Of a stretch of 64,000 nucleotides of DNA, positions 1 to 55,015 are shown one piece after another. Where the stretch lies: the IMG/VR virus record IMGVR_UViG_3300009158_000031, positions 186,001-250,000 of that record; one strand, written 5' to 3'. How positions within the stretch are numbered: the first letter of the stretch is position 1; each line of letters begins with the position of its first letter. The notes below the pieces were generated by a model. That model was not told the DNA's origin, searched no databases, and saw only the letters and a list, made by a program, of their open reading frames with translations. The position numbers and the translations under genes were made by a program.

Positions 1-957
1 AAGAAATCCGGTGCTGGTTTTGAAATCGATGTTGAAAAACTATCTAGTCAAGAACAAGATGATTTATTAAAATATTTACACTCACAAGATTATTTAGAAG
101 AATCTGTTAATGAAGCTTGGAGTAATATAGACACCGACAAAGCTGCCGATCTAATCAATAAAGAAATTGGAGTTAATCCTGGTTATTTCTTTATTGGCGA
201 TGAAGATTTATGCATCAAATTTGATAAATTATGGACTGAAAAGAAATACAAAGTAGCTCTTAATATGTTATTTTTTATTGAAAATCTAAAAGATCTTAAA
301 GACTTCATAAAACAAAACCAAAACGAATCGGTTAATGAAGCAGTATCACCAGAAGTACATCGTATGGTTAATAAATTTGTAACCGGTATGGCTGATAAAT
401 ATGATTATTCTTTACAAGATGCAGTTTATGCAATACTAGACGTTTTAAAAAGTCAAAAATATAAAGGATTAAAAGAATCTGTTAATGAAGGTGAAACTTT
501 AATATTTGATGAGATCGGAGAAAACCTAACCAAACTTCAGGATCAAATAGATGCAATGCTTAAATGGGAAATCACCGATCAAAAATGGATCGTTGCACTT
601 AAAACAATTCAATCTGCCTGTTCTAAATTGGAAGATACTGTCGCTAAAGCTGATCAGAAATTAGGTGCTATTGAATATAATGAATCCATTAGTGAAGGTC
701 TTTTAAAATTAGATGAAGGTGCTGTTAAACAATTTGAGATCGATTATAAAGACATGGAAAGTAGTATCAAACGAGGTATTGGTTGGATTGATCCTGAATA
801 TGTGGCTGAAACTTGGGAGAATTCTTCAGATACTATTGATTATGAAATAGTTAGAAATGAAATTCTTACTCGTCTAATTAAAGCCGATCTTCTTTATACA
901 TCACTAGATGGAGAAACTAAAGGTAAAAGAATTACCAACATAAGTCAAATTAAATAA
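1..957 (+). CDS. 5'-truncated putative virion polyprotein with repeated ESVNE-like protease sites
   Basis: Frame 1 is open from base 1 (KKSGAGFEID...), so the ORF begins upstream of the window. Repeats EESVNEA, NESVNEA, KESVNEG, NESISEG, LDEG separate short helical modules. Confidence 0.7.
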   Translation, partial: KKSGAGFEIDVEKLSSQEQDDLLKYLHSQDYLEESVNEAWSNIDTDKAADLINKEIGVNPGYFFIGDEDLCIKFDKLWTEKKYKVALNMLFFIENLKDLKDFIKQNQNESVNEAVSPEVHRMVNKFVTGMADKYDYSLQDAVYAILDVLKSQKYKGLKESVNEGETLIFDEIGENLTKLQDQIDAMLKWEITDQKWIVALKTIQSACSKLEDTVAKADQKLGAIEYNESISEGLLKLDEGAVKQFEIDYKDMESSIKRGIGWIDPEYVAETWENSSDTIDYEIVRNEILTRLIKADLLYTSLDGETKGKRITNISQIK

Positions 958-1859
958 TGCTAAAATTTAATCAATTTGTTAACCTGATTCTTAATGAAGG
1001 AGGTAATGCGATTGAGGATGCTCGTCCTATTTTGCAATCTGAAATAGATGCAACGTATGCATATGTTATTAAAAACATATATCCTCTTATTGGTCTTGCC
1101 GAAGATTTTGCTAAACCAATAGGATCTTTTAAGAAAAAAGCACCTGATCAAACATCTGGTGATATCGATATTGCCGTTCTTGCTGATAGAATTGCCGGAG
1201 AAAATGGAATTGATTTATCTCAGGTTCTTGAATTCATCGCATCTAAATTGAGTGATTATTCTCCGGTCGTTAGTAAAGGGTTTCAACAAGTTTCTATAGG
1301 TGTTCCAATTGAAGGTGATAAGAAAAAAGGTATTGCACAAATTGATTTGATGCTAACAGATAATCTGAATTTTTCCTCCTTCATGTATCATTCACCAGAC
1401 TTTACTCAAGCAGAATCCAAATATAAAGGACTTTACCGTAATATTCTACTAATGAATATCATTAGCAATTCGAAACGAGAAACTACCAAGCTAACCGACA
1501 AAGGTGAAATTGAAGAATATCGTTCATATGTACTTCGTCTAAATCAAGGTGTTGTTGCGGTAACCAAATCGTTTATAGGTAAGAAAGGGTTAGTTAAGAA
1601 TCCTACATTACTCAACGATCAAGATAAATTTATGTCTAATACTCCAGAAGTTATTGCGGAATTGGCATTCGGTCCGGATGTTCCCATTTCAGAAATAATG
1701 ACTTTTGAAGATACTTGGAGACATACAATGGATTCTAAATTTATTCACCAAGATAAATTAGATGCAATTCTAAAAGATTTCAGAACTAGATTACTTGCTG
1801 CTAAAGTTCCTTTCCCTATTGAATGTGTAGAACAATACCCAAATATATTTACATCATGA
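957..1859 (+). CDS. Pol-beta-superfamily nucleotidyltransferase with N-terminal capsid-targeting-like tag
   Basis: PIGS...SGDIDIAV and AQIDLM catalytic motifs; N-terminus MLKFNQFVNLILNE|GGNA. Confidence 0.75.
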   Translation: MLKFNQFVNLILNEGGNAIEDARPILQSEIDATYAYVIKNIYPLIGLAEDFAKPIGSFKKKAPDQTSGDIDIAVLADRIAGENGIDLSQVLEFIASKLSDYSPVVSKGFQQVSIGVPIEGDKKKGIAQIDLMLTDNLNFSSFMYHSPDFTQAESKYKGLYRNILLMNIISNSKRETTKLTDKGEIEEYRSYVLRLNQGVVAVTKSFIGKKGLVKNPTLLNDQDKFMSNTPEVIAELAFGPDVPISEIMTFEDTWRHTMDSKFIHQDKLDAILKDFRTRLLAAKVPFPIECVEQYPNIFTS

Positions 1860-3382
1860 TGTTAAAATACAATCAATTCGTTCAATGGTTAAATGAATCA
1901 GCTATGGCTCCAGTTGAATGGAATGAGAAGCCTAAATATCGAGTACAATTTCTTAGTTTCTTAGAAGATAAAAATAAAGAACTTATAATTGATGGTAAAT
2001 ACAAATCCTCATATCCATTTCTAACTTTCAAAGTTTCTGATATTTCTAATTTAGAAGATATACAATCGTTTATAAAAAGTGATAAAGCGGTTTCATCTAA
2101 AGAACCTTTAATGGATGTTGATGCAGTTAAAATACCATTAACACATTTGCTAAAAACTGGATTATTTACTAATCAATCAAAGACTTCAACTGATACCGAT
2201 ACTAAAGAAGGTATGGTTGTTTATTTCTACTACAATCAAGACGCAGACATTCTTTCTATAAAAAATTCAGAAGCAGTTGCATTAGTAGATAACATTCCGA
2301 ATGGAGATTTACATCCAAAAGCTATGGATAAAATTAGATTATGGTTATCTGATTTTGATAGAGAAAATGAAGAACAAATCGCTCAATGGAAATCTACCGG
2401 TAATGTAATGGCTGAATTTTTATCGAATGGATATCATTTAGACCGAAATGATATACTTATAAAAGTTAGAGATAGGGCAAGAATACTTTCTGGTTTAGCA
2501 CCGGATAATTGGTGTCCTGGAGACGTTTACTTAGTAGATCCTTCTGCTAAATCTACCATACTTGATTATGTAAATAATGCAAAAACCATAGGAGAATTAA
2601 ATTTATTATTCAATGATTCATTCACACCAAGAGAAACCTCAGCTGAACCTATGGGATCTCTTGTAGCGGTTTCTCTTAAACAACAAGTAGCTAGATTAGG
2701 TAGAGCAAAAGAATTCCTAAAAACAATATCCACAAAAGATTCAGTATATAACCTTACAAAAGAAGAATTGGTTAAATGTAAAACTGATGAATCTTGGGCA
2801 AAAGCAGAAATTTCTAATTATCAACAACTCTTAGGAACTATCGCTTCTAAATCAGAGATAACCGTTCATTATAACCCTGGAAGTGTAGATCGTATTAAAC
2901 CGGCTTTATTACCTAGTAAATTGGCTGCCATAAAATTAACTTATCATCTACTTACTTTACCAAAAGAATCACCGGAAGATCTTGATGATAATCTTCTAAG
3001 TGTTCTTCAATTTGGACTTAAGCAAGCCGACAAATCAACAAATCCTCCATATTTCAAAATCACCGGAAGTATAAAAGGTGAAGGTAGTTTAGAGTTCTTT
3101 CATGGAGGAGATACTTTAAAGTTATTAATTGGAGGAATTGGTAACAAAGAAGCCAAGCTAGTTATTTTAGATTTACCTAGTAGATTAGATATTGTTCTGT
3201 TTTATTACGTTTCAATTGGCGATACTGCATATGAAATTCGTTTAAGGTCGGCAACTACCAATAGTAAACAAGCCGGATTAGAATTTGAAAGAAAAGATAT
3301 TATCGGAAATCTTGTAGAAGATCCTCAAGGAACAACATCTAAAATAGATAAATTATTCCATCAAAGATCCTCGATGAAATAA
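1856..3382 (+). CDS. Tagged protein with PD-(D/E)XK restriction-endonuclease-like motif
   Basis: Start moved to ATGA overlap at 1856 (MMLKYNQFVQWLNE); DNWCPGDVYLV...VSLKQ motif. Confidence 0.55.
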   Translation: MMLKYNQFVQWLNESAMAPVEWNEKPKYRVQFLSFLEDKNKELIIDGKYKSSYPFLTFKVSDISNLEDIQSFIKSDKAVSSKEPLMDVDAVKIPLTHLLKTGLFTNQSKTSTDTDTKEGMVVYFYYNQDADILSIKNSEAVALVDNIPNGDLHPKAMDKIRLWLSDFDRENEEQIAQWKSTGNVMAEFLSNGYHLDRNDILIKVRDRARILSGLAPDNWCPGDVYLVDPSAKSTILDYVNNAKTIGELNLLFNDSFTPRETSAEPMGSLVAVSLKQQVARLGRAKEFLKTISTKDSVYNLTKEELVKCKTDESWAKAEISNYQQLLGTIASKSEITVHYNPGSVDRIKPALLPSKLAAIKLTYHLLTLPKESPEDLDDNLLSVLQFGLKQADKSTNPPYFKITGSIKGEGSLEFFHGGDTLKLLIGGIGNKEAKLVILDLPSRLDIVLFYYVSIGDTAYEIRLRSATTNSKQAGLEFERKDIIGNLVEDPQGTTSKIDKLFHQRSSMK

Positions 3383-4014: not shown

Positions 4015-4449
4015 ATGATACTAAACTACCAAGAATATCTTGCTTTAGAAGAAGCCGCTAAGTACTCAATCGATAAAAATCATTCTCTAATTGCCGTTCA
4101 TGGTCTTTCATTGAGAGATCAAATACACGTTTGGCATTGGCAAACCGAGGTTGGCGATCAACATAAAGCCTTAGGAGAATTTTACGAAAACTTATTAGAA
4201 ACTCTCGATCAATTAGTAGAAGCTATAATGGGAAAATACGGAAGAATTTCTGTTAAGACGGTTGGATCTCCTAAACCTCTTGTTGATCTACAAGATCTAA
4301 AAAACATTGACGCTTTTGTTGATGAATACATAAAACTTTTTGACAATTTCAGAAACACAACTTTCAAAAATGATACAGAAATTCAGAATATCATAGATGA
4401 AATCGTTGCAGAAGCTCTTAAATTGAAATATCTCCTAACAATGTCTTAA
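4015..4449 (+). CDS. Ferritin/Dps-like protein (DUF5856-like) with N-terminal tag
   Basis: HWQT...HKALGEFYE...LVEAIMG...KYLLT; N-terminus MILNYQEYLALEE. Confidence 0.7.
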   Translation: MILNYQEYLALEEAAKYSIDKNHSLIAVHGLSLRDQIHVWHWQTEVGDQHKALGEFYENLLETLDQLVEAIMGKYGRISVKTVGSPKPLVDLQDLKNIDAFVDEYIKLFDNFRNTTFKNDTEIQNIIDEIVAEALKLKYLLTMS

Positions 4450-12525: not shown

Positions 12526-13533
12526 ATGGAAAGAAAATTAGCAAGCATTCAAGTCATTCGAGACATTCGTCCTATTGAAGGAGCAGATGCAATCGAATTA
12601 GCAATCATTAATGATTGGCAAGTAGTAGTCGCAAAAAGCGTAGGTCATCAAGTTGGCGATCATGTTGTTTATTGTGAAATTGATTCATTCTTACCTATAA
12701 GAGAAGAATTCGAATTCTTGCGAAAAAGTTCTTATAGGAAGATGGATGATCTAGAAGGATTTCGTCTTAGGACTATAAAACTTCGAGGACAAATATCACA
12801 AGGACTTATCGTACCAATAAGTATATTTGGTGATTTTGGATGGACCGCATATGAAGGTCTTGATGTTACCGAAAGATTAGGAATTATAAAATACGAACCA
12901 CCTATCCCTGCAGAATTAGCCGGTAAAGTAAAAGGAAACTTTCCTTCATTTATACCAAAGACTGACGAAGAAAGAATTCAAAATCTAACTGACAAATATG
13001 AGACTTGGAAAACTCAACCATTTTATGTTACTGAAAAATTAGATGGATCATCCGCAACCTACTACTTCCGCAATGGAGAATTTGGAGTGTGTTCTAGAAA
13101 TCTAGATCTTGAAGAAACTGAAGGTAATACCTTTTGGAAGATTGCTCGAGAATTAAAGATAGAAGAATGGTTAGGAACACAATCAATTAATTATGCCATT
13201 CAAGGTGAGTTAATTGGTGAAGGTATTCAAGGAAATCCTTATAAGATCAAAGGACAAACGGTTCGCTTCTTTAACGCATTCAATATAGACAAATATGAAT
13301 ACTTAAGTTTAGAAGAATTCGAATCCCTAATCACTTCAATGAAGTTAAAAACCGTTCCAATTATCGATCGTGCATTTACTTTACCTAATACAATCGAAGA
13401 ACTTCTTAATTATGCCGATAAGAAAAGTGAATTGAATAATCAATTTGATCGTGAAGGTGTCGTTATTCGTAGTATCGATCGAAAAATCAGTTTCAAAGTA
13501 ATCAGTAACAAATTTCTACTAAACGAAAAATAA
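12526..13533 (+). CDS. RNA ligase, DRB0094 family
   Basis: N-terminal OB-like domain (IEGADAIE, KLRGQISQGL), PKTDEERIQN, TEKLDGSS, QGELIG, REGVV, FKVISNKFL. Confidence 0.9.
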   Translation: MERKLASIQVIRDIRPIEGADAIELAIINDWQVVVAKSVGHQVGDHVVYCEIDSFLPIREEFEFLRKSSYRKMDDLEGFRLRTIKLRGQISQGLIVPISIFGDFGWTAYEGLDVTERLGIIKYEPPIPAELAGKVKGNFPSFIPKTDEERIQNLTDKYETWKTQPFYVTEKLDGSSATYYFRNGEFGVCSRNLDLEETEGNTFWKIARELKIEEWLGTQSINYAIQGELIGEGIQGNPYKIKGQTVRFFNAFNIDKYEYLSLEEFESLITSMKLKTVPIIDRAFTLPNTIEELLNYADKKSELNNQFDREGVVIRSIDRKISFKVISNKFLLNEK

Positions 13534-31409: not shown

Positions 31410-31787
31410 ATGAAATCAATACCTACATATCACGAATTCCTTAATGAGACCGTCTCATTTAATACCGATACTACTGGTCGTGAAGATTGGGATGATGATC
31501 TAAAGAAACATTCTAGAGATTTTACTCAATCTATAGTAATAATGAGTCCGATGGATTTCTTGAAGAGAGTTCAATATCACCGATTTGAGATTAATAAATC
31601 TAAAGTGGCTAATTATGTTAAAGAATTTCGTGGTAATGTCAAAGGAATTCCAGCACCAACCATGTGGTTCTCTGATAAGTTTCAATACGATAAAGGACTT
31701 GCTCCTGCTTTTCATGATGGATCTCATCGCATGCTAGCTCTACAAGAAGTAGGGATACGAGAAGTTCCGGTTAAAATTATATACTAA
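31410..31787 (+). CDS. ParB/Srx-like domain protein with N-terminal tag
   Basis: MKSIPTYHEFLNE; MSPMDFL...HDGSHRMLALQEVGIREVPV. Confidence 0.7.
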   Translation: MKSIPTYHEFLNETVSFNTDTTGREDWDDDLKKHSRDFTQSIVIMSPMDFLKRVQYHRFEINKSKVANYVKEFRGNVKGIPAPTMWFSDKFQYDKGLAPAFHDGSHRMLALQEVGIREVPVKIIY

Positions 31788-31788
31788 G

Positions 31789-32409
31789 ATGAAAAACATT
31801 CAAACATACGAAAGCTTCTTAAATGAACTTCGACATTCAAAAGAGTTTTTAATAGACCTATTTTCTAAAATGGATATTTTAGATAATGATGTATACAAAA
31901 ACATTTTAATCCATTACATTGAACAACCACAAAATTTAGAAAAACAAGAGTTCATTGATTTAGTTTCATGGTTGATCCAGAATAAAAACAAGTACAGTGA
32001 AGTACTAAAGCCTAAAAATGGATATGCATACAGAGGAACTTCAATAACTCCTGATATGTTTCATAAATTAAAAAATGGATTATCAAAAAAAGAAGGTGGT
32101 ATAAGCATATTTAACTTTCCTTATACCAGCGAATCAGAAGCACAAAGTTGGACATATGATTATAAAGTAGCAATGAGGTTTGCGGATAAAGGTCTTTTAA
32201 ATAACCCTAGATTAGAAAAAGGAGCTAGACCAGCTATTTTAAGAGCTAAGATAGATGATACATTTGTAGGTAATCCTAAGTTGACTGGTCCCATAGCTGA
32301 CCGATTAAGTCTGAAGTCCGAAAAGGAAATATTTCATTTAGGGAATTCTATAAAAGATGCTGAATGGATGATATTCTCAGCCGATATAGAATTAGGAAAA
32401 TTTAATTAG
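31789..32409 (+). CDS. ADP-ribosyltransferase-like protein with N-terminal tag
   Basis: MKNIQTYESFLNE; R-S-E pattern AYRG...QSWTYDYKVAMRFA...SEKEI. Confidence 0.6.
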   Translation: MKNIQTYESFLNELRHSKEFLIDLFSKMDILDNDVYKNILIHYIEQPQNLEKQEFIDLVSWLIQNKNKYSEVLKPKNGYAYRGTSITPDMFHKLKNGLSKKEGGISIFNFPYTSESEAQSWTYDYKVAMRFADKGLLNNPRLEKGARPAILRAKIDDTFVGNPKLTGPIADRLSLKSEKEIFHLGNSIKDAEWMIFSADIELGKFN

Positions 32410-32419
32410 TATAAAGACT

Positions 32420-32818
32420 ATGAAATCAATATCGACATATGATGAATTCTTAAATGAGTCTATTCGTGCAGAAGAGGCTTATCGAGATACAGGAGCTATT
32501 CAAACCGTCATTGATGGAAAGAGAGATATGGGATTCATTACCATCAAATCATCGGTTGATGTGAGCGAAAAAGAATTCTGGACATTGGTGAAGATACACG
32601 ATCTGAGTACCATTCACCTATCTGGAAATGAATATGATGCCTATATCTATTATCATAAAGGAGCCGAGCGAGGTGCCAGAGAGCTAGCGAAGATTGCTAA
32701 CAAATACGGTGGATATCTATCACATGAAGCGACTGAACGAGAATCTCGTCGAATAGGCGAACTTCTAGGTTACGATCGACGAGACATAGATGATTATATA
32801 AAGAAAAACTACAAATAA
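32420..32818 (+). CDS. Tagged hypothetical protein
   Basis: MKSISTYDEFLNE; IGELLGY motif. Confidence 0.65.
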   Translation: MKSISTYDEFLNESIRAEEAYRDTGAIQTVIDGKRDMGFITIKSSVDVSEKEFWTLVKIHDLSTIHLSGNEYDAYIYYHKGAERGARELAKIANKYGGYLSHEATERESRRIGELLGYDRRDIDDYIKKNYK

Positions 32819-32975
32819 TGGATAATGGAAAACGTAATCAATTAAAACCTGTGAGAATCGCTGATGTTAATAAGTTGGTGGCTAATGATCCGAGGATTCT
32901 TATTAAAGTTAATCATAAAGGTGGAAGTGGAGTTTCTCTTATGAACACTAATAAAATTAAAGACCGAAAATAAGA

Positions 32976-33680
32976 ATGAGAAAGATAGCCTTATATGAGC
33001 AATGGATAAATGAAATTGGTGATTCATCAGCCAAGCCATTCAAATGGAGTAGTCCTGTTATCGCTGTTAATATGAAGAGATGGATAGATGATTGTATCGA
33101 AGGAGCTGCAGACAAGAAGATGAGTGGAACTCAAGAAGATATTTACTATAAAACTAAAACATTTAGATATGAATTCCGATCGGATGTGACTAATACAAAT
33201 TATCATGTACACATCGGTGGATTTGTTGGTAGAAATATCTGGATTGCCTTTCAAGGAGAAAAACCTAAAGATTGGGTTGGATATCATATAATTGCCGGAT
33301 TAGGATTTGGTGTTGAAGGAGATTTCGATAAAACTACTAATCTTAATGAACAATTCCGAGTAATGGCAACCGTTACCGAATGTGCCATTGATTTTCTACA
33401 ACGATTCTTGGATGATGGACGAATCAAGATTGATAAATTTCACATGAAACCTAAGGCCGATCACGAAGAACAAAAAGGAATAGATTCTCGTCGAGCTAAA
33501 CTATATGCCCCTTATATTAAAGCCGCATTCCGCAAACTCAAAACGAAGAAGGATTATTACATAGATCAAGAGGCAGATGGATTCGTTCTTCATTTCGGAA
33601 AGGTCATAATGAACTCTCCTTATTCCACTTCAGTATTAGCATCAACCTTTGAAAATGAAGAATCCAATGAAATCAATTAA
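32976..33680 (+). CDS. Tagged hypothetical protein
   Basis: MRKIALYEQWINE; FRVMATV...RRAKLY motif. Confidence 0.65.
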   Translation: MRKIALYEQWINEIGDSSAKPFKWSSPVIAVNMKRWIDDCIEGAADKKMSGTQEDIYYKTKTFRYEFRSDVTNTNYHVHIGGFVGRNIWIAFQGEKPKDWVGYHIIAGLGFGVEGDFDKTTNLNEQFRVMATVTECAIDFLQRFLDDGRIKIDKFHMKPKADHEEQKGIDSRRAKLYAPYIKAAFRKLKTKKDYYIDQEADGFVLHFGKVIMNSPYSTSVLASTFENEESNEIN

Positions 33681-34737
33681 GCTATATGAAGCCTTCTTAA
33701 CAGAAGGAGGCTGGGCAACAACCAAAACACAAGGAACCGTTCTGACTCCAGCTGTTATCGCTGAGGTTGTGAAGGTTATGGATCTGATCAATACGGGATT
33801 CAATGGACATTTGAGAGAGCTTGAACTTCCCACTCTAGATATTCTAAAACCTATTGGCAGTGGAACTTGGTGGAGTGAAGATGTGACCGAACAACCAGAC
33901 AAAACTTATGGAGATGTCGATTACATGGTTGCCTATCCCACTTTGAAGCTCACTGCTGGTCGTGATAGAGAAGATGAGATTGCTACGGTGAAGCTATACA
34001 ATACCGAGCTGCTCATGTGGTTAGAGGAAGAAGGTATCACCGATGTAGATATTGATGAGACGAAGAAAATATCTTCGGATGTTTCTCTTAAGTTAATTGC
34101 GATCGTTCCCTTTAATGGAACTGATGCATATGTTCAGGTTGATATGGTTGTTACTCACAAAGAGTATAGTGATTGGGCAGTATTCCGTATGACTCCTATT
34201 CGTAACGTTAAAGGTTTTGTGCTAGGAAATCTCTACTCTTCATTTGGTGAAGTTCTAGATTTGTCTATTCAGGCAAGAGGAGTAAGAGCTAAATTTGAAG
34301 GTCAGGTTATGAAGCCTTATTCTAAACGAGCTAATGTTGAGGATCGCATCATCTCACAAAATGCTGAATCATTCATGACCGATATCGCTCGTTTCTTTTG
34401 GGAACAGAGCGGAACAGATATTCCATTCACCGCTACTCCTATCGAATCTTGGAAGGGAATGGATCGCAACTCTCCTCGATTCGAAGATCTAGCCGAAGGA
34501 ATTCGTCTGGTTGCCGAGACACTAGGTCAGCTAGACGAATTTGGAACTACTATTAAATACAAATCAGCTGCTGATCTACTAAATGCAGTGATTGCTCAAT
34601 ATACGAAGAAGATGATGGAAGCTTATAATTCTGCTAAATTTGATAAGGCAGAAACTCCAGCAGCAAAAGCCATTATCACTAAAGTTAGAGCAACCATTGA
34701 CGAATATATCAGTCTGGCTAAATCACTACTTACATAA
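33667..34737 (+). CDS. Pol-beta-superfamily nucleotidyltransferase with N-terminal tag
   Basis: Start moved to 33667 (MKSIKLYEAFLTE|GG); KPIGSG...YGDVDY...VQVDMV. Confidence 0.7.
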   Translation: MKSIKLYEAFLTEGGWATTKTQGTVLTPAVIAEVVKVMDLINTGFNGHLRELELPTLDILKPIGSGTWWSEDVTEQPDKTYGDVDYMVAYPTLKLTAGRDREDEIATVKLYNTELLMWLEEEGITDVDIDETKKISSDVSLKLIAIVPFNGTDAYVQVDMVVTHKEYSDWAVFRMTPIRNVKGFVLGNLYSSFGEVLDLSIQARGVRAKFEGQVMKPYSKRANVEDRIISQNAESFMTDIARFFWEQSGTDIPFTATPIESWKGMDRNSPRFEDLAEGIRLVAETLGQLDEFGTTIKYKSAADLLNAVIAQYTKKMMEAYNSAKFDKAETPAAKAIITKVRATIDEYISLAKSLLT

Positions 34738-34744
34738 AAGTAAT

Positions 34745-35119
34745 ATGTTATACTATTCACCAAAAATTGCAGTCGGAGAATCGACTGTAGCAGGCAGAGG
34801 TGTATTTGCCATAGCCGATATAGAGGCTGGAGAGGTACTTGAAGAGTGCCACTTCTTTTTACTAACTAATGGTAATCATTCAGCTATGGATGATACTTTA
34901 AAAGAGATGGTATTCGCATGGCCGGCATATAATGATGTTCATCAATTTGCTGTTGTACTAGGCAGTGGAACTGTTTATAATCATTCATATGAAAACAATG
35001 CAACCTGGGATACTGATGAAGCTAAATGCTGTTTCAGATTTTCTTCTACTCGAGACATAAAGGCCGGTGAAGAGATATTCACAAATTATAACCGAAGCGG
35101 AGGAAATCACTTTGATTGA
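34745..35119 (+). CDS. SET domain protein-lysine methyltransferase
   Basis: GRGVFAIADIEAGE...YNHSYENNA...RDIKAGEEIFTNY; start at 34745. Confidence 0.9.
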   Translation: MLYYSPKIAVGESTVAGRGVFAIADIEAGEVLEECHFFLLTNGNHSAMDDTLKEMVFAWPAYNDVHQFAVVLGSGTVYNHSYENNATWDTDEAKCCFRFSSTRDIKAGEEIFTNYNRSGGNHFD

Positions 35120-35145: not shown

Positions 35146-36063
35146 ATGGCTAATTCAACATACACAGATCTTCAAGTTCTTATTCAACGAATAAGAGGTA
35201 AGCGAGTTCTTCTTCTTACAACATCTAATAGATGGAGTGGTGATGAAGGAGGAAAACCTAAATCTACTCAATTGGCTGAGTTAATAGCCAGATCTTTATA
35301 CGACGATTCAACGGATTCTACTCTTTGTAAAGTAATAGATATTCCATCTCTCAATATTCACAACTGTGAAGGTAATGTATCTTCCGGAAGTGGTAATGGT
35401 TGTGGAGTTAAGGCTGCTGCCCTAAAGGATACCACTAAAAATCCTACTGGTAATCTTCGTTGTTGGGCTTCTATTAATAATGCCGATGATGAGTTATGGA
35501 AAGTTAGTAATGCTATATTCGAATCAGATGTAGTCCTCTTCTTTGCTTCTACAAGATGGGGTCAGGCAAATGCATTCTATCAAAAACTTATCGAACGTCT
35601 AACTTGGTTAGAGAATCGTCACACTACTCTTGGTGAATCTAATCTACTAGGAAATATTGAAGCTGGTGGATTCTTCATTGGACACAATTGGAATGTAGAA
35701 GATGTAATGAATACTCAAAGAACGGTACTTCAGTATTTCGGATTTCAAGTTCCACCTCAACTTTTTCTTCACTGGCAATGGACTAATAGTGATACTAACG
35801 AAACTCAGAAAGGATATGAAGCTGATGCTAAAGACTTCAAAGAGGTTTGGAAAGTTGGAACATATCCTTTAGAGGAAAGTTTTAATCGTTGGTTGAATGA
35901 AGCTGGTTATGATGCTGGTTCTAGAAAACCTACTCCGGAAGAGGTTGAAATGTGCAAATCTCCAGAAGGATTTAATCAGATAAACCACTGCAAAGCTTTA
36001 GGACTTACTCCTCGTGAAGATGGAACCAAAGCCAAATCTAAAAAATATGGTGGTGACGCATAA
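35146..36063 (+). CDS. Flavodoxin-fold NADPH-dependent FMN reductase/Fe-S flavoprotein-like, with C-terminal tagged extension
   Basis: TTSNR, HNCEGNVS, RCWAS, ESDVVLF..STRWG...YQKLIERL; internal EESFNRWLNE. Confidence 0.7.
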   Translation: MANSTYTDLQVLIQRIRGKRVLLLTTSNRWSGDEGGKPKSTQLAELIARSLYDDSTDSTLCKVIDIPSLNIHNCEGNVSSGSGNGCGVKAAALKDTTKNPTGNLRCWASINNADDELWKVSNAIFESDVVLFFASTRWGQANAFYQKLIERLTWLENRHTTLGESNLLGNIEAGGFFIGHNWNVEDVMNTQRTVLQYFGFQVPPQLFLHWQWTNSDTNETQKGYEADAKDFKEVWKVGTYPLEESFNRWLNEAGYDAGSRKPTPEEVEMCKSPEGFNQINHCKALGLTPREDGTKAKSKKYGGDA

Positions 36064-36845
36064 TGAAACCGATAAAACTTTTTGAAGATTTTATTAATGA
36101 ATTCGATACAGGTAAAGTATTACTAGGTGATCCTTCTTTATTGGGTAGACCTAATAAATGGGAAGATCTCGGAATAGAGTTTGAACCTAATACTGCTGAC
36201 AAAACTCAATTAATACAATTGATAAAAGATTGGATTTTTAAAGTAAAGGCAGATCCAAAGATGGGACATATCCTTAAAGAATTGCTGCCCTTAAAAAAGA
36301 AGTTTCCGAAAATATTAGAACCATCTGAAGGTAGATCCGTCTATGAAGGTACTTCTCTTTATAGAGGAACTATAATACCATTTAAAGAAGTGTTATCACT
36401 AAAGGGTAAATGGAAACGTAACGACGCGGTTGATATTTTTGGTGGTAGCCTAAATCTCAGTACATCATATAATTGGGAAAGTATTAATAGAAAGGGATTC
36501 ACTTCGTTTACACCATCTATCGAAATAGCGGCCACTTTTGCAGGAAGCCTTAGTTCAGAAAATTATAACGAAATTGTAGCATCTAAAACGGTTGTTAAAA
36601 GATTATTAGATGGATCCATTGATGGTATGATTCCGATGATTATTAAAATTAAAGACACACATCCCTTAGCAATTATGAATCCGGTGTTTACTCAATCAAT
36701 TCACGAATTCATGAATGAATTTGAGGTATTTGTTGTTGGAAATAAAATCCGGGTTGATGAAGTTATAATTCCAGGATGGCATTACTACGAAAGAGATGCT
36801 AAAGAATTAGGAGTAGATCTTACAAAATATTTTAACATACAATGA
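36063..36845 (+). CDS. ADP-ribosyltransferase-like protein with N-terminal tag
   Basis: MKPIKLFEDFINE; LYRG...FTSFT..IEIAATFA...NEFEV. Confidence 0.55.
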   Translation: MKPIKLFEDFINEFDTGKVLLGDPSLLGRPNKWEDLGIEFEPNTADKTQLIQLIKDWIFKVKADPKMGHILKELLPLKKKFPKILEPSEGRSVYEGTSLYRGTIIPFKEVLSLKGKWKRNDAVDIFGGSLNLSTSYNWESINRKGFTSFTPSIEIAATFAGSLSSENYNEIVASKTVVKRLLDGSIDGMIPMIIKIKDTHPLAIMNPVFTQSIHEFMNEFEVFVVGNKIRVDEVIIPGWHYYERDAKELGVDLTKYFNIQ

Positions 36846-37450
36846 AACATATCCAAGGTTTTAATACATTCCTTAATGAAGGCGAAGGTTTATTTGCTGA
36901 TGCCGGTAAAGGATCTACTAAAGGAATTGGATATGGAACGCCAGAAAAAGCTAAAGAGACTATTAAGATCGCTGACAAAATGAAGGCAGACGATCCAGGA
37001 AAAGCCGTTCAAATCGTTAATGCCATGCTCAATCGAGCTAAATACTCAAATGGTCAGAATGATGGCATGAGAGCAGCAATTCCCATCTTTCAAAAATGGT
37101 TAAAGGCCAATCAAGCATCTGAATCATTTTTAGGAGTTGATGAATTCATTCTAGAAAAACTTTGGCAAAAGGAAGTAGAATCTTCTCACCTTAACGAAAT
37201 TGAATATGACTCATCAACTGAAGAACTAACTATTACTTTTAACAATGGAGACCGCTACAGATATTATGAAGTTCCTAAATCCATCTTCCGAGAATTTGCC
37301 AATGAGAAAACTATTCTAGGAAAGATTGGTGGAGGAATTGTCAAAGGAGCCAAGAAGCTATTTGGTAAGGATATTGACGAAGGTACATATGGTAAAAAAT
37401 TCTGGTCACTCATTCGTCGAGGTGGCTATCAATACGAAAAACTCTCATGA
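36842..37450 (+). CDS. Tagged two-domain protein with C-terminal KTSC domain
   Basis: MKHIQGFNTFLNE; VESSHLNEIEYD....LTITFNNGDRYRYYEVP. Confidence 0.7.
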   Translation: MKHIQGFNTFLNEGEGLFADAGKGSTKGIGYGTPEKAKETIKIADKMKADDPGKAVQIVNAMLNRAKYSNGQNDGMRAAIPIFQKWLKANQASESFLGVDEFILEKLWQKEVESSHLNEIEYDSSTEELTITFNNGDRYRYYEVPKSIFREFANEKTILGKIGGGIVKGAKKLFGKDIDEGTYGKKFWSLIRRGGYQYEKLS

Positions 37451-38112
37451 AAGAAATAAAATTATATGAGCAATGGCTCAATGAAATCGATGGTCCTGCA
37501 GATGGATCTCTATTCGGTACATCCGGAGTAGATTTTGGATTCATCGGTCTGCAAGATCCAGGAGACACACCAAATTCGTTTGAACCTAATATGGTTGAAT
37601 CCTTTATTATTGATCTTCTTCAAAGACACAATAATACCGTTCCTTCTCCTGGCACACTTACCGTCGAGTATCTTGAAGATATCGAAAAGGTACAAACCGG
37701 AATGAGTGATAAAGATCGATCATTTGTTCAGGCAGTTAATAATAATCCTATGGCTTTTCATGTTGAAGATGCCAAGAAAGCTGGTATTGATCTAGATGGT
37801 AAATGGTTAACTGAATGTTGGGATTATGCTACCAGTGTAGCAGGTACTGCAAAAGATATTTGGAAAGTAAAACGTCCATTTGAATTAAGCTCAAAAGTCA
37901 AGGGGTTGGTTCCTACTAAATCCTTCTCATTTCCTTCAACTAATGCGGCCGGATCTTTTTATGTAGCAAAAAAGGTTGCAGAGAAATATCCTCAATTGAA
38001 AGAATCTCAAATGGAAGTGGCTACTCAAATAGCAAATTCACGAGTTGTTGCCGGTGTGCATCATCCATTAGATATTGCCGTTGGAAAAATGTTAGCCTTA
38101 GGCTTATTATAA
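37447..38112 (+). CDS. PAP2/acid phosphatase-family protein with N-terminal tag
   Basis: MKEIKLYEQWLNE; K......RP, PSTN (for PSGH), SRVVAGVHHPLD. Confidence 0.75.
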   Translation: MKEIKLYEQWLNEIDGPADGSLFGTSGVDFGFIGLQDPGDTPNSFEPNMVESFIIDLLQRHNNTVPSPGTLTVEYLEDIEKVQTGMSDKDRSFVQAVNNNPMAFHVEDAKKAGIDLDGKWLTECWDYATSVAGTAKDIWKVKRPFELSSKVKGLVPTKSFSFPSTNAAGSFYVAKKVAEKYPQLKESQMEVATQIANSRVVAGVHHPLDIAVGKMLALGLL

Positions 38113-38750: not shown

Positions 38751-41700
38751 ATGAGAAACAAACATATGAAAAATCCTATTTTAATTTGCCTGTTACTATT
38801 TAATTTAATTGTAATTGGACAAACAACACCTAAAGAAAGATACATAAACAATTCTGATTATCTTTCTAAAAACTCCTTAGTCGATTACAAAAGCTATTAC
38901 GGAGATTCCATACAAGGATTCGACGAAGCAGCTATGAAAGTTGAACTACTAAGACGAAACGTTTTTGGTTCAGAATACATCAACTACATTGCTCTTGTAA
39001 AAAGAGAATGGGTAAATCAAAAGTACGGTATCAAACCTGTACTACCTATCAATTCAAACAACCGACCTATTGGAGGTCCTAACTCAGTTAATTCACCTGG
39101 TAATGCTTGTGTGAATGAAGACTTTGAGCTTACTGCACCTGGAGCTTATAATGGAATGAATTCTGTTTTAGGATGGACAATTCAAAGTGGACAAAATACT
39201 TCCAATATCTGTTGTGGAAATCCTACATATGGTGCTGGCTGTGTTGCTAATCCTATTGCTAATTGGAATGCAGGTAGTCCTGAATTTTCTATTGTTGCTA
39301 CTCCAATACTACCTGCTCCTAGTTGTGCTAATCCTCCTGGATTTAGTATTGACAATGTATCAATACCTAATTCACCTCTTGGCGGTAACCGAGTTGCAAG
39401 ACTACAAAACTCATGTCCAACCGGTTTGATGACTCGAATTATGACACAATTTCCTGTTTCAAATTCTAATACCTTATTTCAATTTTGTTATGCTGGTTCA
39501 TGGGATGGTGTTCATGAATGTTGTGGACAACCTGCTTTTAGAATCGATATGTATAATTGTACAGGTTCATTAATCCCAATACCATGTGCCAATGTAAGCC
39601 TAACTCCTTCCGGACAATCTTGTCAAAGTGGAGTTCCTGGATATCAGGTAACCAGTGGAGTTTCATGGGTTAATTGGCAAACAAAATATATTGACTTAAC
39701 TCCTTATATTGGTCAGTGTATTAGAATTGTGGTAACTTGCTCAGATTGTTCTTATTCTGGACATCATGGAACTGCTTATTTTGATGCAAGATGCGGTGGT
39801 CAATTAGTTGGAGTTGGATTAGGTGGAGTTGGTGGAAACATTGCAGGACCTGTTAGTTATTGTGCTGGTTCAAATCAAGCTATTATTGCCGCACCATTGG
39901 GATACTCGTCATATCAATGGATATCTCCTATCACAGGAACAATTCCTGCTAATGCAGGAGGTACAGCTCCAGTATTAACCATAAGTCCAGTAGTTGCAGG
40001 TTTAGTGTATACAGTTCAGTTAAACTCACCATCAGGGTGTTCTTATATTGCAACCAATACAATCATGCCTACTCTTGTAAACATTGCAGGTATTGGTTCA
40101 GGCACAAGTTGTGCAGGAGGATCAAGTGGAACGGGTACTGTTCAAGGTAATGGCAGTGGCACAGGATACAATTATACTTGGGTAAATTCAAATAATGCTG
40201 TAGTTGGTACCTCAGCAACAGTAAGTGGACTGCTTCCAGGAACATATAGCGTAACTATAACTGGTCTTGGCGCTGCAGGATGTGGTTCAGCAACATCAAC
40301 TATATCAATAGGAGTTGGAATACCTCAAATGCAAAATCTATTAAAACCGTATTGTGGTTCTCAAGCCTATTTAAGTGTAACGGGTAATAGTGTTCAGTGG
40401 TCTACCAACAATACAGCTATCTCCGCTCCATTAGGAGTGGCAATGGGATACACAGTAAACAATCCAGTACAGGCTTCAGTATACACAGTTACCTATACTT
40501 CATTACAAAATTGTAATGAAGCAGCTTCATTCACCCTAATACCATCTCCGCCGGGCAGTATATCATTACTAACTACTTCTGTTTGTTTAAACTCGACAAA
40601 TGGCAGTGGAACTATTAATCTAACTCCTGCATCTGGTTCTCCTCCTGGAGCTAATTCATATTCAGTATGGAATTCTAATAATACTCCGGTTTACAATTCA
40701 TCATTGTCTCCTACTAATCAAAATAATTATTTGTTTGGAAACATGGGAACCGGTAGTTATCAAGTAAGAGTATTTGATGGTTCCTGTGCATACACAACTT
40801 CCTTTATTATACCTACTCATGTATTTTCTCCTACATTAAGTCCAACCTCAACAACTCTATGTCCTGGTGGAGGTATTGCAGCCGGAGTAGTATTTAGTAT
40901 TCCACCATCATTATCTCAATACACTTACTCTTGGACACCTAATATCTTTTTAGCAGGAAACACTCAACAATCAACGATTATCATACCAAATCTTGCAGTA
41001 GGTACGCAATCAAATATAACTTACTCAGTTGTAATTACTCCTACTGCTATTAATTGTCCGATGACTCGTACATTAAATTTATGGGCAATCAATCCACCAA
41101 TTCCAACTATTACTGCAATACCTAATATGTGTAACAATATGCTTCCATATCAAGTATTGGCTAATCCCAGTGGTGGTATCTTTACCGGAGTTGGAATGAG
41201 TACATTAGGTTTAATCTCTCCGACTGCTTCACTATTAGGAATCAATAACTTTACATATGCCATTTCAATTAGTACTTGCGCATCATCTAATACTGGAAGT
41301 TATCAGGTATCATATTTCAATACTTCATCATTAAGCTCTTCAATAAATCCTATATGTTCTACTAATTCAACAATAAATCTTATGACTATTGTTCAGAATA
41401 CCTTAGGATCTTGGTCAGGTAATTATATAACGAATAACATATTCAATCCAGCAAATCTAAATGGAGTATACTCATTAACCTACAATAATTTATCAACACC
41501 AAATCCTACAGTATGTCCTTCATCTACTCAAATGAATATATCGGTTACTAATACAATAATTCCGACTATTGCAAATTCCAATCCATTCTGTACGAATGCC
41601 TCCTCTTTTGTATTGATCGCTAATCCAAATGGAGGAATCTGGTCTAACAATTCTGCAGTGAGCGGTTTAGGTATTGTAACTCCTTCATTGACATCTCCTA

Positions 41701-43718
41701 CAAATACAACGGTTAATTATGTCGTTAATGTTGGTCCATGTATAAACACAAACACATTCAACATATATCCATCAACTTTCAATACGGCTTCTTTAACTGG
41801 ATCTATCCCTAATTTATGCGTAACGAGCTCATCAATAAATCTAATGTCAATCGTACAAAATACGACTGGATCTTGGTCAGGAATGAATGTTACTCAAAAC
41901 ATATTCAACCCTTCAGGATTACCGACCGGAAATTATACTTTAACATACAATACCAACTCGGCTCCTAATGTTACTCTATGTCCAGATAACCGAACAATAA
42001 ACATATCGGTTCTTAATCCGGCATCTCCGAACATTACTACATTCGGACCTATATGTAGCAAAGATGCTATTATGCAAATGACCGTTACTCCTAATTCTGG
42101 TAGTTGGATTTCTACTCCATATCTAAACATTAATGGAATATTAAATCCTTCGCTATGTCCTATTGGAATTAATGCCATTCAATATGTAATAGGAACTAAT
42201 ACTTGTTCGGCTCAACAAACAAAAACCTTTGTGGTTGAGATGTTCATTCCATCAACGATAACAAATCAAATACCTGACTTGTGTAATACCAGCTCTCCCA
42301 TAAATCTTAATTCATATTCTGGTTTTCCTGGATCTTGGTCAGGATTAGGAATCAATGGTTCAATGTTTACTCCATCGAATTCAGGAACATTAATTCTAGT
42401 ACATACCACATCATCATCTAGTGGTTTATGTCCTAGTACGTCAAGCATATCAGTTAGAGTATATTCATTACAATCTCCAGTAATAATCAAGCCAAATTCT
42501 GTATGTAACACATATGCGCCTTTCCAATTACAAGTAAATCCAATCGGTGGTATATTCGGAGGTAATGGATCTAATACTAACGGAATTTTTAATCCAGCAT
42601 ATGGAGCGATAGGAAACAATATAATTAATTACAGCATTTCTGCCGGTCCTTGTATAGCATATGCACAGACTACTGTTAATATTGAGAAATTTATATCGGC
42701 TGATCTAGATCGATACCCTAAAACCGTTTATTGTAAAGGTACTGAATATCCTTTTAATCTGAATTCGTTAGTCAAAAATCCAAATTATAATTGGTCTGGT
42801 CCTGGAGTAAATGGTTATATGTTCGATCCACAAATGGCAAACATCGGAAACAACCTAATATATTATCGAACGCATTCTGCACCAACGGCTTCATTATGTC
42901 CGGATGAAAAATCATTTAACATAAGGGTTGCTCAAATAAGTAAACCCATCATATCGCTATCTGATTCAATTGGTTGTGTTCCTCTTAGAGTAATTCTCAA
43001 TTCAAACGAAAATACTGGATTATCTTCTTGGAAATTTAGTAATGGATATTCTAGTGAAGCCAATTCTCTTGCATATACATTTACTTCAAGCGGAATACAT
43101 TCAATAATATTCTCATATATCAATGATGAAGGTTGTGTATCGCCAAATCAAATGATTACTCTTATTAGAGTTGATGAGGTACCTTTTCCCAAGTTTCAAT
43201 TACCAAAATCCATTTATGCAGGAGATTCAGAAATCCAAGCAATAAATCTAACTCCTAATGTAGGAAGTTACACTTACACATGGATGGTATCTAATGGATA
43301 TTCAGTAAACACAATTAATCTTGCATACGATCCCAAGAAAATAGGCAAGTACGAAATAACATTAATTGCAAAGACGGTTAATGGATGCACGGCATCTACT
43401 AGAAAAATGATAGAGATACAAAACGAATTTGAAGTACATATCCCAAATACTTTCACTCCTAATAGAGATGGTCTCAACGATTATTTTCTTCCAGTATTTT
43501 CTGACTATGGAGTTGAGTTATCTTTTTATACACTAGAGATTTTCGATCGATGGGATCACTTAATTTATAGATCAATCGATCCTAAAAAAGGATGGGATGG
43601 AAAAGCCAAAAATGAATTATGTCAACAAGGATCCTATGTATACAGACTTAAGTTTTCTGATAAAGAGAAGAATGTGTATGAGAAGATTGGACATGTTCTC
43701 CTTTTAGGATCCGATTAA
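38751..43718 (+). CDS. Large secreted adhesin-like protein with T9SS type-B (gliding-motility-associated) C-terminal domain
   Basis: Signal peptide (likely start MKNPIL); repeated Ig/SprB/PKD-like modules (GSWSG...FNP); IPNTFTPNRDGLNDYF...IFDRW...WDG...YVY...GHVLL CTD. Confidence 0.85.
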   Translation: MRNKHMKNPILICLLLFNLIVIGQTTPKERYINNSDYLSKNSLVDYKSYYGDSIQGFDEAAMKVELLRRNVFGSEYINYIALVKREWVNQKYGIKPVLPINSNNRPIGGPNSVNSPGNACVNEDFELTAPGAYNGMNSVLGWTIQSGQNTSNICCGNPTYGAGCVANPIANWNAGSPEFSIVATPILPAPSCANPPGFSIDNVSIPNSPLGGNRVARLQNSCPTGLMTRIMTQFPVSNSNTLFQFCYAGSWDGVHECCGQPAFRIDMYNCTGSLIPIPCANVSLTPSGQSCQSGVPGYQVTSGVSWVNWQTKYIDLTPYIGQCIRIVVTCSDCSYSGHHGTAYFDARCGGQLVGVGLGGVGGNIAGPVSYCAGSNQAIIAAPLGYSSYQWISPITGTIPANAGGTAPVLTISPVVAGLVYTVQLNSPSGCSYIATNTIMPTLVNIAGIGSGTSCAGGSSGTGTVQGNGSGTGYNYTWVNSNNAVVGTSATVSGLLPGTYSVTITGLGAAGCGSATSTISIGVGIPQMQNLLKPYCGSQAYLSVTGNSVQWSTNNTAISAPLGVAMGYTVNNPVQASVYTVTYTSLQNCNEAASFTLIPSPPGSISLLTTSVCLNSTNGSGTINLTPASGSPPGANSYSVWNSNNTPVYNSSLSPTNQNNYLFGNMGTGSYQVRVFDGSCAYTTSFIIPTHVFSPTLSPTSTTLCPGGGIAAGVVFSIPPSLSQYTYSWTPNIFLAGNTQQSTIIIPNLAVGTQSNITYSVVITPTAINCPMTRTLNLWAINPPIPTITAIPNMCNNMLPYQVLANPSGGIFTGVGMSTLGLISPTASLLGINNFTYAISISTCASSNTGSYQVSYFNTSSLSSSINPICSTNSTINLMTIVQNTLGSWSGNYITNNIFNPANLNGVYSLTYNNLSTPNPTVCPSSTQMNISVTNTIIPTIANSNPFCTNASSFVLIANPNGGIWSNNSAVSGLGIVTPSLTSPTNTTVNYVVNVGPCINTNTFNIYPSTFNTASLTGSIPNLCVTSSSINLMSIVQNTTGSWSGMNVTQNIFNPSGLPTGNYTLTYNTNSAPNVTLCPDNRTINISVLNPASPNITTFGPICSKDAIMQMTVTPNSGSWISTPYLNINGILNPSLCPIGINAIQYVIGTNTCSAQQTKTFVVEMFIPSTITNQIPDLCNTSSPINLNSYSGFPGSWSGLGINGSMFTPSNSGTLILVHTTSSSSGLCPSTSSISVRVYSLQSPVIIKPNSVCNTYAPFQLQVNPIGGIFGGNGSNTNGIFNPAYGAIGNNIINYSISAGPCIAYAQTTVNIEKFISADLDRYPKTVYCKGTEYPFNLNSLVKNPNYNWSGPGVNGYMFDPQMANIGNNLIYYRTHSAPTASLCPDEKSFNIRVAQISKPIISLSDSIGCVPLRVILNSNENTGLSSWKFSNGYSSEANSLAYTFTSSGIHSIIFSYINDEGCVSPNQMITLIRVDEVPFPKFQLPKSIYAGDSEIQAINLTPNVGSYTYTWMVSNGYSVNTINLAYDPKKIGKYEITLIAKTVNGCTASTRKMIEIQNEFEVHIPNTFTPNRDGLNDYFLPVFSDYGVELSFYTLEIFDRWDHLIYRSIDPKKGWDGKAKNELCQQGSYVYRLKFSDKEKNVYEKIGHVLLLGSD

Positions 43719-54521: not shown

Positions 54522-54601
54522 GCCCTTATGGTGGAATTGGTAGACATGCCAGACTTAGGATCTGGTGCTTAGGCGTGTAGGTTCGAGTCCTACTAAGGGT
54601 A
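54522..54601 (+). tRNA. tRNA-Leu(TAG), CCA not encoded
   Basis: Acceptor GCCCTTA/TAAGGGT, anticodon arm CCAGA-CTTAGGA-TCTGG, T arm GTAGG-TTCGAGT-CCTAC. Confidence 0.95.
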
Positions 54602-54618
54602 CTTAAAATAACTATATT

Positions 54619-54933
54619 ATGAAAAACCAATTAATGATTGCCGGACTTATACTAACTCTAGGGAGTTGTTCAGTCGATAAAGAAATTATCAGCAAAGCTG
54701 AATTTGTAAAATGGTCAACAAAAAATGATACCATCTTTTATAACATTAATCCAGTTGCTTATTATGACCATTCAGAATATGAGTTAAATCCAGGTCACGG
54801 TAAGTATGCTAAACCAATTCAGGAATTATCCATAACGCAATTGCGTTTTGATGTTAAGACCGATGAACTAATTAAATATATACATACAATACATCTTAGA
54901 CAAAAGGTAGAAATTGTAGTACCTCGTCATTAA
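54619..54933 (+). CDS. Lipoprotein
   Basis: Lipobox LGSC. Confidence 0.65.
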   Translation: MKNQLMIAGLILTLGSCSVDKEIISKAEFVKWSTKNDTIFYNINPVAYYDHSEYELNPGHGKYAKPIQELSITQLRFDVKTDELIKYIHTIHLRQKVEIVVPRH

Positions 54934-55013: not shown

Positions 55014-55015
55014 CT

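Follow-up and report, generated by a model that had tools for sequence, protein, structure and literature searches.

Two PolX-like nucleotidyltransferases with T4-type tags as predicted head cargo of a distant T4-like jumbo phage

What kind of enzyme do two divergent nucleotidyltransferase-like genes of an uncultured phage encode, and might their products enter the next host cell together with the genome? The DNA analysed here (the window, 64,000 nucleotides) spans bases 186001-250000 of IMGVR_UViG_3300009158_000031, one virus record 254,393 bp long, with 33% G+C and a CheckV completeness of 83%. The two genes, hereafter NT1 and NT2 (Table 1), had been singled out in an initial annotation for an N-terminal tag followed by Gly-Gly and for the motifs KPIGS, GD[IV]D, Q[IV]D[LM] and KG, all of which can be read in both translations, in the same order. 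On the basis of family alignments, structure prediction and genome setting, we propose that NT1 and NT2 are minimal PolX-like nucleotidyltransferases that would be targeted to the prohead, matured by the phage protease and injected with the DNA.

NT1 starts MLKFNQFVNLILNE/GG and NT2 starts MKSIKLYEAFLTE/GG (the slash marks the predicted cut), the tags ending in L-N-E and L-T-E, respectively. In the NT1 family alignment G56, S57, D69, D71, Q128, D130, K157 and G158 are invariant or nearly so, as are G64, S65, G82, D83, D85, Q157, D159, K182 and G183 in that of NT2; the GDID of NT1 is invariant in alignment A1 and conserved to at least 90% in alignment A4. Because the catalytic triad is retained in every part of the family, even in members at 25% identity, both proteins are very likely active enzymes. 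Each has some 200 or more metagenome homologues, many of them supplied by marine metagenomes including Tara samples, and with 1077 cluster representatives at 50% identity (HMMER) the NT1 family is large, phage-specific, unnamed and almost wholly viral, and lacks a Pfam model. Among phage records, tblastn detected relatives of NT1 at E values of 2e-25 to 2e-5 in the Agrobacterium phage Atu_ph07 (AUZ94877.1), the Sinorhizobium phage Phosso (XYS97604.1) and Lak phages, and no match to NT2; a megablast search of the same kind of records with the first 12 kb of the window returned nothing.

The two proteins had been described as very divergent, and BLASTP bears this out: only the GS...DxD stretch aligns, at E 0.005. 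Likewise, in scans of the genome with HMMER the profile hidden Markov model (HMM) of the NT1 family misses NT2 and that of the NT2 family misses NT1. Comparison of shallow profiles built from close homologues with hhalign gave a probability of 81%, which rose to 96.7% (E 4.3e-10, 143 columns from the tag to the strand of the third Asp) with a 51-sequence NT1 profile. Because this profile-profile comparison is significant, we regard NT1 and NT2 as real, very old paralogues whose shared motifs are not due to chance; hhalign is the sole method that links them at profile level, HMMER profiles having failed to do so.

A Pol-beta nucleotidyltransferase fold had been suspected from the motifs, and AlphaFold2 (AF2) models of NT1 (pLDDT 78.8) and NT2 (pLDDT 86.3) point to just such a fold. 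In both models GS closes one strand, DxD is on the strand after it, and the third Asp occupies the middle of a later one, which is the canonical Pol-beta arrangement; the superfamily elements hG[GS], [DE]h[DE]h and a third carboxylate are thus present on the same sheet. The tags appear disordered, with pLDDT values below 50 for residues 1-15 of NT1 and 1-14 of NT2. The comparison with Foldseek that had been suggested as a check yielded 97 matches in the PDB at E<=1e-3, pol beta among them at E 3e-5, and VIA-align matched dozens of members of the superfamily.

Of the relatives named initially, CCA-adding enzymes, CD-NTases and MNT proteins, the common core stands, but the closest structures to NT1 and NT2 are family X DNA polymerases with their palm plus thumb. 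CCA-adding enzymes, CD-NTases and MNT/MenT proteins align over the core of ~100 residues only and with lower Z. The predicted models superpose on both the palm and the C-terminal thumb of PolX, the alignment of NT1 to pol beta reaching residue ~251. Pol beta residue ~142 is where the structural alignments start, and the mature proteins would begin ~5-10 residues before the palm. The segments GSFRRG..SGDMDVL and YFTGS of pol beta are similar to GSFKKK..SGDIDIA and MYHSP here. Neither protein displays the head plus neck/body domains of class I or class II CCA-adding enzymes (marked by PF01743 in class II), the cGAS/DncV-like bilobed fold with C-terminal helical lobe and nearby effector gene of the CD-NTases of CBASS, or the bare core of ~100-190 aa with a HEPN or antitoxin partner that marks MNT and MenT.

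Structure databases of predicted models tell a similar story. In AFDB and BFVD the full-length matches are uncharacterised phage and metagenome proteins with TM-scores of 0.67-0.79, and giant-virus PolX proteins rank below them. The AFDB cluster representatives A0A0F9EJV6 and A0A2D6MGQ0, automatically named nucleotidyltransferases, reach 0.67 and 0.76, and the Atu_ph07 protein 0.72 with Foldseek; judged by tblastn, Foldseek and TM-score together, these two proteins and the Atu_ph07, Phosso and Lak homologues are true family members. A 1096-aa phage protein in BFVD, A0A6J5TD12, named ParB/Sulfiredoxin, also contains an NT2-like domain (TM 0.79).

Sequence profiles lean the same way only among the relatives. 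When 51 family members were scanned with Pfam, the match seen most often was PF14792, DNA_pol_B_palm, in 8 of them, these being weak matches (best E 7.4e-5) to which the family cut-off was not applied; Polbeta and NTP_transf_2 each matched three members. Against NT1 and NT2 themselves, the PolX models PF14792 (palm) and PF14791 (thumb) gave no match at E<=1, and the profile HMMs A1 and A4 retrieved only chance matches (L10, CWC2) from PDB sequences. The language-model neighbours are clusters of viral proteins with NTP_transf_2 and, more weakly, with pol beta palm and thumb. Like family X enzymes, NT1 and NT2 carry the GS...DxD...D triad on the canonical strands; unlike them, they have no significant PolX match among Pfam or PDB sequences, and they possess extra C-terminal helices, a conserved N-terminal Gly-Gly segment and a phage-specific spread, while their polymerase activity is predicted. 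We therefore call them PolX-like in architecture, and not members of family X, since the models resemble PolX but the sequences of NT1 and NT2 do not match it.

The phage encodes a Gp23-type major capsid protein (PF07068, E 5.5e-37) and a gp21-type prohead protease of the Peptidase_S77 family (PF03420, E 2e-14), both above the cut-off. The nearest match of the capsid protein, at 55% identity, is from an uncultured 462-kb phage; more remote ones are from Tenacibaculum phage pT24, Sphingomonas phage PAU, Chryseobacterium phages and Lak megaphages, which sets it apart from T4 itself. From the capsid protein and protease matches we therefore take the phage to be a distant T4-like jumbo phage. The protease domain occupies the N-terminal part of its open reading frame (ORF); the long remainder is an acidic, repetitive stretch rich in [LIV]-x-E sites, and the whole looks like a protease-scaffold fusion.

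In T4, N-terminal propeptides of 10-19 residues guide cargo into the core of the prohead; residues 4 and 7 matter for targeting, residues 8 and 10 for processing, and gp21 cleaves after L/I-X-E inside the prohead (PMC9026906). This cargo, to which the enzyme Alt belongs, is ejected into the host cell (PMC9026906; PMC3012670). T4 IPIII and IPII start MKTYQEFIAE/A and IPI starts MKTFKEFTSTTTPVSTITE/A. The tags of NT1 and NT2, 13-14 residues long, share with MKTYQEFIAE the pattern aromatic-x-x-aromatic-[LI]-x-E, with aromatic residues in the places of T4 residues 4 and 7. Genome-wide, 36 ORFs, together coding for ~7,500 residues, carry the N-terminal tag MKxIxT[FY]xEF[LI]NE/[GAS], with a modal length of 13, and a strict pattern search found ~37 matches right at the start Met versus ~8 elsewhere in long ORFs. 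The tag is portable on unrelated families and separable from the mature domain: apart from NT1 and NT2 it is found on a RimK-type ATP-grasp protein, a GT2 glycosyltransferase, PAP2 and KTSC proteins, an NleE-like protein (sub-threshold) and many proteins without a family. Several tags contain two consecutive sites (LNESINE, LNEVRLNE). The tagged genes cluster at 133-137.6 kb (11 in a row), 182.9-189.4 kb and 217.4-224.1 kb of the genome, and NT1 and NT2 each lie within such a run. These data support reading the tag as a T4-type signal for capsid targeting and cleavage, and the tagged set looks, for a T4-like phage, like a very large proteome predicted to be injected. The suggestion that NT1 and NT2 are delivered with the genome is thus reasonable as an inference, because a T4-type tag and a gp21-type protease occur in the same phage; tag and protease stand as observations.

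The most telling of the new findings comes from checking the predicted cut against relatives of NT1. In 209 of 270 NT1-family proteins Gly-Gly follows directly on the Glu of an x-E site, in 166 after a short tag and in 43 after a longer pro-region or another domain, and at least 20 of the 270 start with MGG. The untagged Atu_ph07 and Phosso homologues start with MGG as well. In the NT2 family E/GG is invariant. The predicted cut site thus coincides with the natural N-terminus of untagged members, which supports cleavage at the E/GG bond. It also shows the tag to be an add-on to the enzyme, and the strict retention of the dipeptide suggests that a free Gly-Gly N-terminus may matter to the enzyme or be part of its mechanism.

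Fusions give hints about function. NT1 shares one ORF with a HIGH-type CTP_transf_like nucleotidyltransferase in seven representatives and with DUF6267 in three; fusions of NT1 to these two families in other phages include P0262, P0274, P0277 and P0270. P0282 combines it with a class II CCA/poly(A)-polymerase domain. P0278, a genuine ORF of 1636 aa under genetic code 11 with a T4-type portal gene nearby, joins it to a class II CCA/PolyA_pol enzyme, an AAA_33 P-loop kinase and an HD phosphohydrolase. Taken together, kinase, phosphoesterase, CCA enzyme and polymerase-like transferase would be the components of an end-healing and repair set. The PolX-like thumb of the models favours addition of nucleotides to nucleic-acid 3' ends over the synthesis of cyclic nucleotides or the modification of proteins or small molecules. 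The substrate may be either DNA, in line with the fold, the Atu_ph07 replication genes and the precedent of African swine fever virus (ASFV), or RNA, in line with the fusion partners.

We therefore favour the following scenario, to which we assign a probability of roughly 0.55 and which starts from what is seen directly: the motifs, the homology, the fold, the likeness of the tags to those of T4, the presence of the protease and the E/GG rule. NT1 and NT2, old paralogues and minimal family-X-like (pol beta palm plus thumb) nucleotidyltransferases, would be made as precursors whose 13-14-residue T4-type capsid targeting sequence takes them into the prohead core. There the gp21-type protease would cut after L-[NT]-E, and the mature enzyme, now starting with Gly-Gly, would remain in the head with the DNA and be injected into the next cell with some 35 other tagged proteins. 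Its GS / DxD / D two-metal site would extend nucleic-acid 3' ends by nucleotides, most likely for fill-in or tailing within an end-repair set active before any phage gene is expressed. A bolder version is tentative and in our estimate rather doubtful: that this marine jumbo-phage lineage has expanded T4 capsid targeting to some 36 cargos and injects an end-repair or end-modification set built on two minimal PolX-like polymerases whose activity depends on the protease-exposed Gly-Gly N-terminus.

Several observations weigh against this scenario. Searches of Pfam, PHROG and PDB sequences with NT1 and NT2 themselves returned no usable match. Both models lack the 8-kDa lyase domain and the helix-hairpin-helix fingers of pol beta and carry an extra C-terminal helical region of ~50-85 residues; the same two domains are missing from ASFV Pol X, a 174-aa enzyme reduced to the palm and a C-terminal subdomain. 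The 36 tagged proteins far exceed the handful of T4. The Atu_ph07 and Phosso homologues and that of Lak-A1, which starts MSG, are untagged, so that a place in the virion is no general trait of the family. P0278 has no N-terminal tag, which fits activation by the protease without packaging equally well. As to the substrate, the fusion partners argue for RNA, but the fold and the Atu_ph07 context for DNA. Finally, cleavage, packaging and ejection are steps that we infer, as is the activity of NT1 and NT2, and the phage has no cultured close relative.

The main rival to the scenario holds that NT1 and NT2 are protease-gated zymogens that are not packaged at all: the extension would keep the enzyme inactive until the protease frees Gly-Gly late in infection, for work in the producing cell. 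It would explain why Gly-Gly is kept with or without a tag, in MGG starts and at x-E/GG junctions after short tags, after long pro-regions and within polyproteins, including P0278, in which the junction to NT1 reads LNE/GG. Protease control of Pol-beta-fold enzymes is, moreover, known from host CD-NTases that are activated by cleavage with a phage prohead protease (Hobbs and Kranzusch preprint, PMC12991175). NT1 and NT2 would resemble these as nucleotidyltransferases of the same fold whose state is changed by gp21-type cleavage; there, however, a host enzyme is cut in an internal loop and yields an immune signal, whereas here a phage enzyme with a fold closer to PolX would be cut at its N-terminus. 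What speaks against the zymogens is the tag itself, which is more than a cleavage site and keeps the aromatic-x-x-aromatic-[LI]-x-E pattern that carries the targeting determinants of T4. It is also attached to 36 unrelated proteins, most of which cannot be expected to need N-terminal activation, and cleavage in T4 takes place inside the prohead (PMC9026906). We consider this rival unlikely.

Distinctly less probable is that the injected enzymes modify proteins or small molecules to counter host defence, by AMPylation as in MNT, GlnE and DrrA or by nucleotidylation of the antibiotic type. The catalytic core is common to all these enzymes, and modifying-type proteins are found among the tagged set, namely the sub-threshold NleE-like protein and PAP2 near NT2 and the RimK-type ATP-grasp protein elsewhere; yet on the models MNT-like as well as CD-NTase-like roles rank lower, and no partner genes point to them. 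The initial annotation had suggested both nucleotidylation of defence proteins and decoy signal nucleotides, and none of the present findings speaks for either.

An improbable reading, put forward in the initial annotation, is that NT1 and NT2 add CCA or repair the 3' ends of the phage's own tRNAs. The two tRNAs indeed lack an encoded CCA, being followed by TTA and TAA, and the fusion of NT1 to class II CCA-type enzymes in P0278 and P0282, in the former together with the kinase and HD domains, places the family near tRNA or RNA end repair. The argument from the tRNAs is weak, since absence of an encoded CCA is the norm and the genome contains an untagged class II PolyA_pol/CCA-type gene; because of this gene and the untagged RNA ligases, a packaged CCA enzyme is neither needed nor indicated. 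Synthesis, upon entry, of cyclic or linear oligonucleotides that act as decoys or interfere, after the manner of CD-NTases or OAS, is the least probable role, as matches to such structures span only ~90-130 residues and rank under nine PolX entries, no CD-NTase Pfam match occurs among the 51 family members, and no effector or sponge-like partner is present.

Returning to capsid-loaded, protease-matured 3'-end enzymes, the closest precedents are T4 and ASFV. As in T4, a gp21-type protease and a gp23-type capsid protein are accompanied by diverse, unrelated cargo, and Alt exemplifies a packaged and ejected enzyme (PMC9026906); unlike in T4, the tagged genes number ~36 and the cargo would include Pol-beta-fold nucleotidyltransferases. 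ASFV virions package a minimal Pol X and other base-excision-repair enzymes (PMC6505686), whereas packaging of NT1 and NT2 is predicted from the tag. The Atu_ph07 and Phosso homologues differ in lying among replication genes, downstream of a primase/helicase gene.

Our literature search retrieved no description of a nucleotidyltransferase with a capsid targeting sequence or of a packaged phage PolX. Capsid-targeted cargo and Pol-beta-fold transferases are already known kinds; what is new is their combination in a large, never-studied family. To our knowledge, polymerases carried into the cell by phages have been described only for RNA polymerases (N4, phiKZ-like and crAss-like phages). If packaged and active, NT1 and NT2 would mean that phages can also equip the cell with nucleic-acid polymerase or repair functions before gene expression. 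The bolder version of the scenario, if true, would make them the first known parallel among phages to the Pol X repair system packaged in ASFV virions, and would add an unnamed polymerase family of more than 1000 cluster representatives. As the family has no studied member, one biochemical characterization would annotate thousands of genes, and the E/GG and MGG starts provide a concrete prediction of maturation. The 36-gene tag set offers a sequence-only readout of the injected proteome of an uncultured jumbo phage, which may help to find counter-defence proteins.

Table 1. Positions of NT1, NT2, their motifs and other features (window numbering unless marked as genome).
Feature	Position	Strand	Remarks
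NT1 gene, PolX-like Pol-beta-fold nucleotidyltransferase precursor, 300 aa	957..1859	+	ORF; AF2 model; family X polymerases are best PDB matches
NT1 N-terminal tag, residues 1-14	957..998	+	predicted prohead-protease cut after E14, before G15-G16
NT1 KPIGS, residues 53-57 (K53, S57)	1113..1127	+	G-S motif ending strand 52-56; G56, S57 invariant
NT1 GDID, residues 68-71	1158..1169	+	first two catalytic carboxylates D69, D71; strand 70-75
NT1 QIDL, residues 128-131	1338..1349	+	third carboxylate D130; middle of strand 126-134; invariant in A1
NT1 K157-G158	1425..1430	+	inside invariant SKYKGLYRN, start of helix 157-172 (thumb-like part)
NT2 gene, PolX-like nucleotidyltransferase precursor, 356 aa	33667..34737	+	distant paralogue of NT1
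NT2 N-terminal tag, residues 1-13	33667..33705	+	predicted cut before G14-G15; E13, G14, G15 invariant
NT2 KPIGS, residues 61-65	33847..33861	+	P62, G64, S65 invariant; after strand 58-63
NT2 GDVD, residues 82-85	33910..33921	+	G82, D83, D85 invariant; strand 84-90
NT2 QVDM, residues 157-160	34135..34146	+	third carboxylate D159; Q157, D159 invariant; strand 152-164
NT2 K182-G183	34210..34215	+	invariant
Tagged ORFs in window	starts 1856, 31410, 31789, 32420, 32976, 33667, 36063, 36842, 37447		plus the gene ending at 957
Tagged 507-aa protein, C-terminal part	1..957 (genome 185434-186957)	+	starts MKPIKNYNEFINE/A; directly upstream of NT1
Tagged 508-aa protein	1856..3382	+	starts MMLKYNQFVQWLNE/S; directly downstream of NT1; no Pfam family
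Four consecutive tagged genes (125, 206, 132, 234 aa)	31410..33680	+	upstream of NT2
Three consecutive tagged genes (260 aa; 202 aa KTSC; 221 aa PAP2)	36063..38112	+	downstream of NT2
S77 protease ORF, 639 residues	genome 101664-103583 (L001)		protease domain is N-terminal part
Class II PolyA_pol/CCA-type nucleotidyltransferase, 244 aa	genome 117079-117813 (L026)		untagged
Tagged 437-aa protein	genome 182865-184178 (L011)		just upstream of window; precedes the 195-aa CTP_transf_like gene
CTP_transf_like HIGH-type nucleotidyltransferase, 195 aa	genome 184830-185417 (L011)		tag-like N-terminus; two genes upstream of NT1
DUF5856 protein (PF19174, E 3e-16)	4015-4449		tag-like N-terminus MILNYQEYLALEE; position downstream of NT1 kept in L012
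tRNA genes	54522-54602; 54942-55014		first is tRNA-Leu(TAG); then TTA and TAA, CCA not encoded

The 507-aa tagged protein has no Pfam or PHROG family and contains repeated ESVNE/A, ESVNE/G and NESISE/G sites. Cleavage at these would yield several fragments, as with a scaffold or with a polyprotein that gives rise to small internal peptides. In L012, a relative of 308 kb, ORFs matching in size flank NT1, with DUF5856 downstream and an ORF of ~479 aa that can be likened by position and size to the 508-aa protein, which suggests that the gene order around NT1 is kept. The 437-aa tagged protein is placed near DUF6267 clusters by the ESM Atlas (0.97), with no HMM support. As EKTDGQQISISWKDGKLIAARNK can be read as ligase motif I, this protein was considered as a ligase partner of NT1, and it is retained as a lead only: Pfam, a PDB profile search and hhalign against the DUF6267 part of P0262 gave no support, nor did genome scans with PF19782, PF01068 and PF09414. 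The gene upstream of the Atu_ph07 homologue has a weak RNA_ligase match (E 0.002) and no similarity to the 437-aa protein or DUF6267, of which our literature search found no mention. In P0247 (589 aa), a metagenomic NT1 homologue, the fusion partner is a domain resembling DruA of Druantia (PF14236, E 3e-9).

Around NT2, the intact gene for the 132-aa tagged protein (window 32420-32818) matches the NleE cysteine methyltransferase family PF20798 at E 7e-5, a sub-threshold hit with 22.9 bits against a cut-off of 27. The KTSC (PF13619) and PAP2 phosphatase-superfamily (PF01569) proteins at window 36842-38112 share the tagged run of NT2. Directly downstream of NT2, and overlapping its end, lies an untagged SET-domain gene (PF00856, E 4.6e-14; window 34640-35119), and a 1655-aa ORF (window 38751-43718) follows just downstream of the tagged cluster. 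Elsewhere in the genome, the tagged RimK-type ATP-grasp ligase (PF08443, E 2e-34; genome 109121-110626, L008), with a Zn_protease-like C-terminus, and the tagged GT2 glycosyltransferase (genome 141685-142566, L010) would both be unusual as head cargo.

The T4 late promoter TATAAATA is not enriched genome-wide and is absent upstream of the tagged genes, where the 40 bases 5' of the start are A/T-rich and devoid of an obvious Shine-Dalgarno sequence. Considered alongside the kinship of the capsid protein to those of pT24, Chryseobacterium and Lak phages, these upstream regions and the promoter result hint at a Bacteroidota host. Two untagged genes of the RNA-ligase family PF09414 are located at window 12526-13533 (E 2e-28) and 53118-54221 (E 3e-6), the second just upstream of tRNA-Leu(TAG). 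An SmpB-like ORF, identified from KAKFDYHFIEQYEAGIVLFGTEVKSIK, lies two genes upstream of the PolyA_pol gene, both within genome 116216-117813 (L026), and the small ORF between the two tRNAs (window 54619-54933), which starts MKNQLMIAGLILTLGSCS, looks like it begins with a lipoprotein signal peptide.

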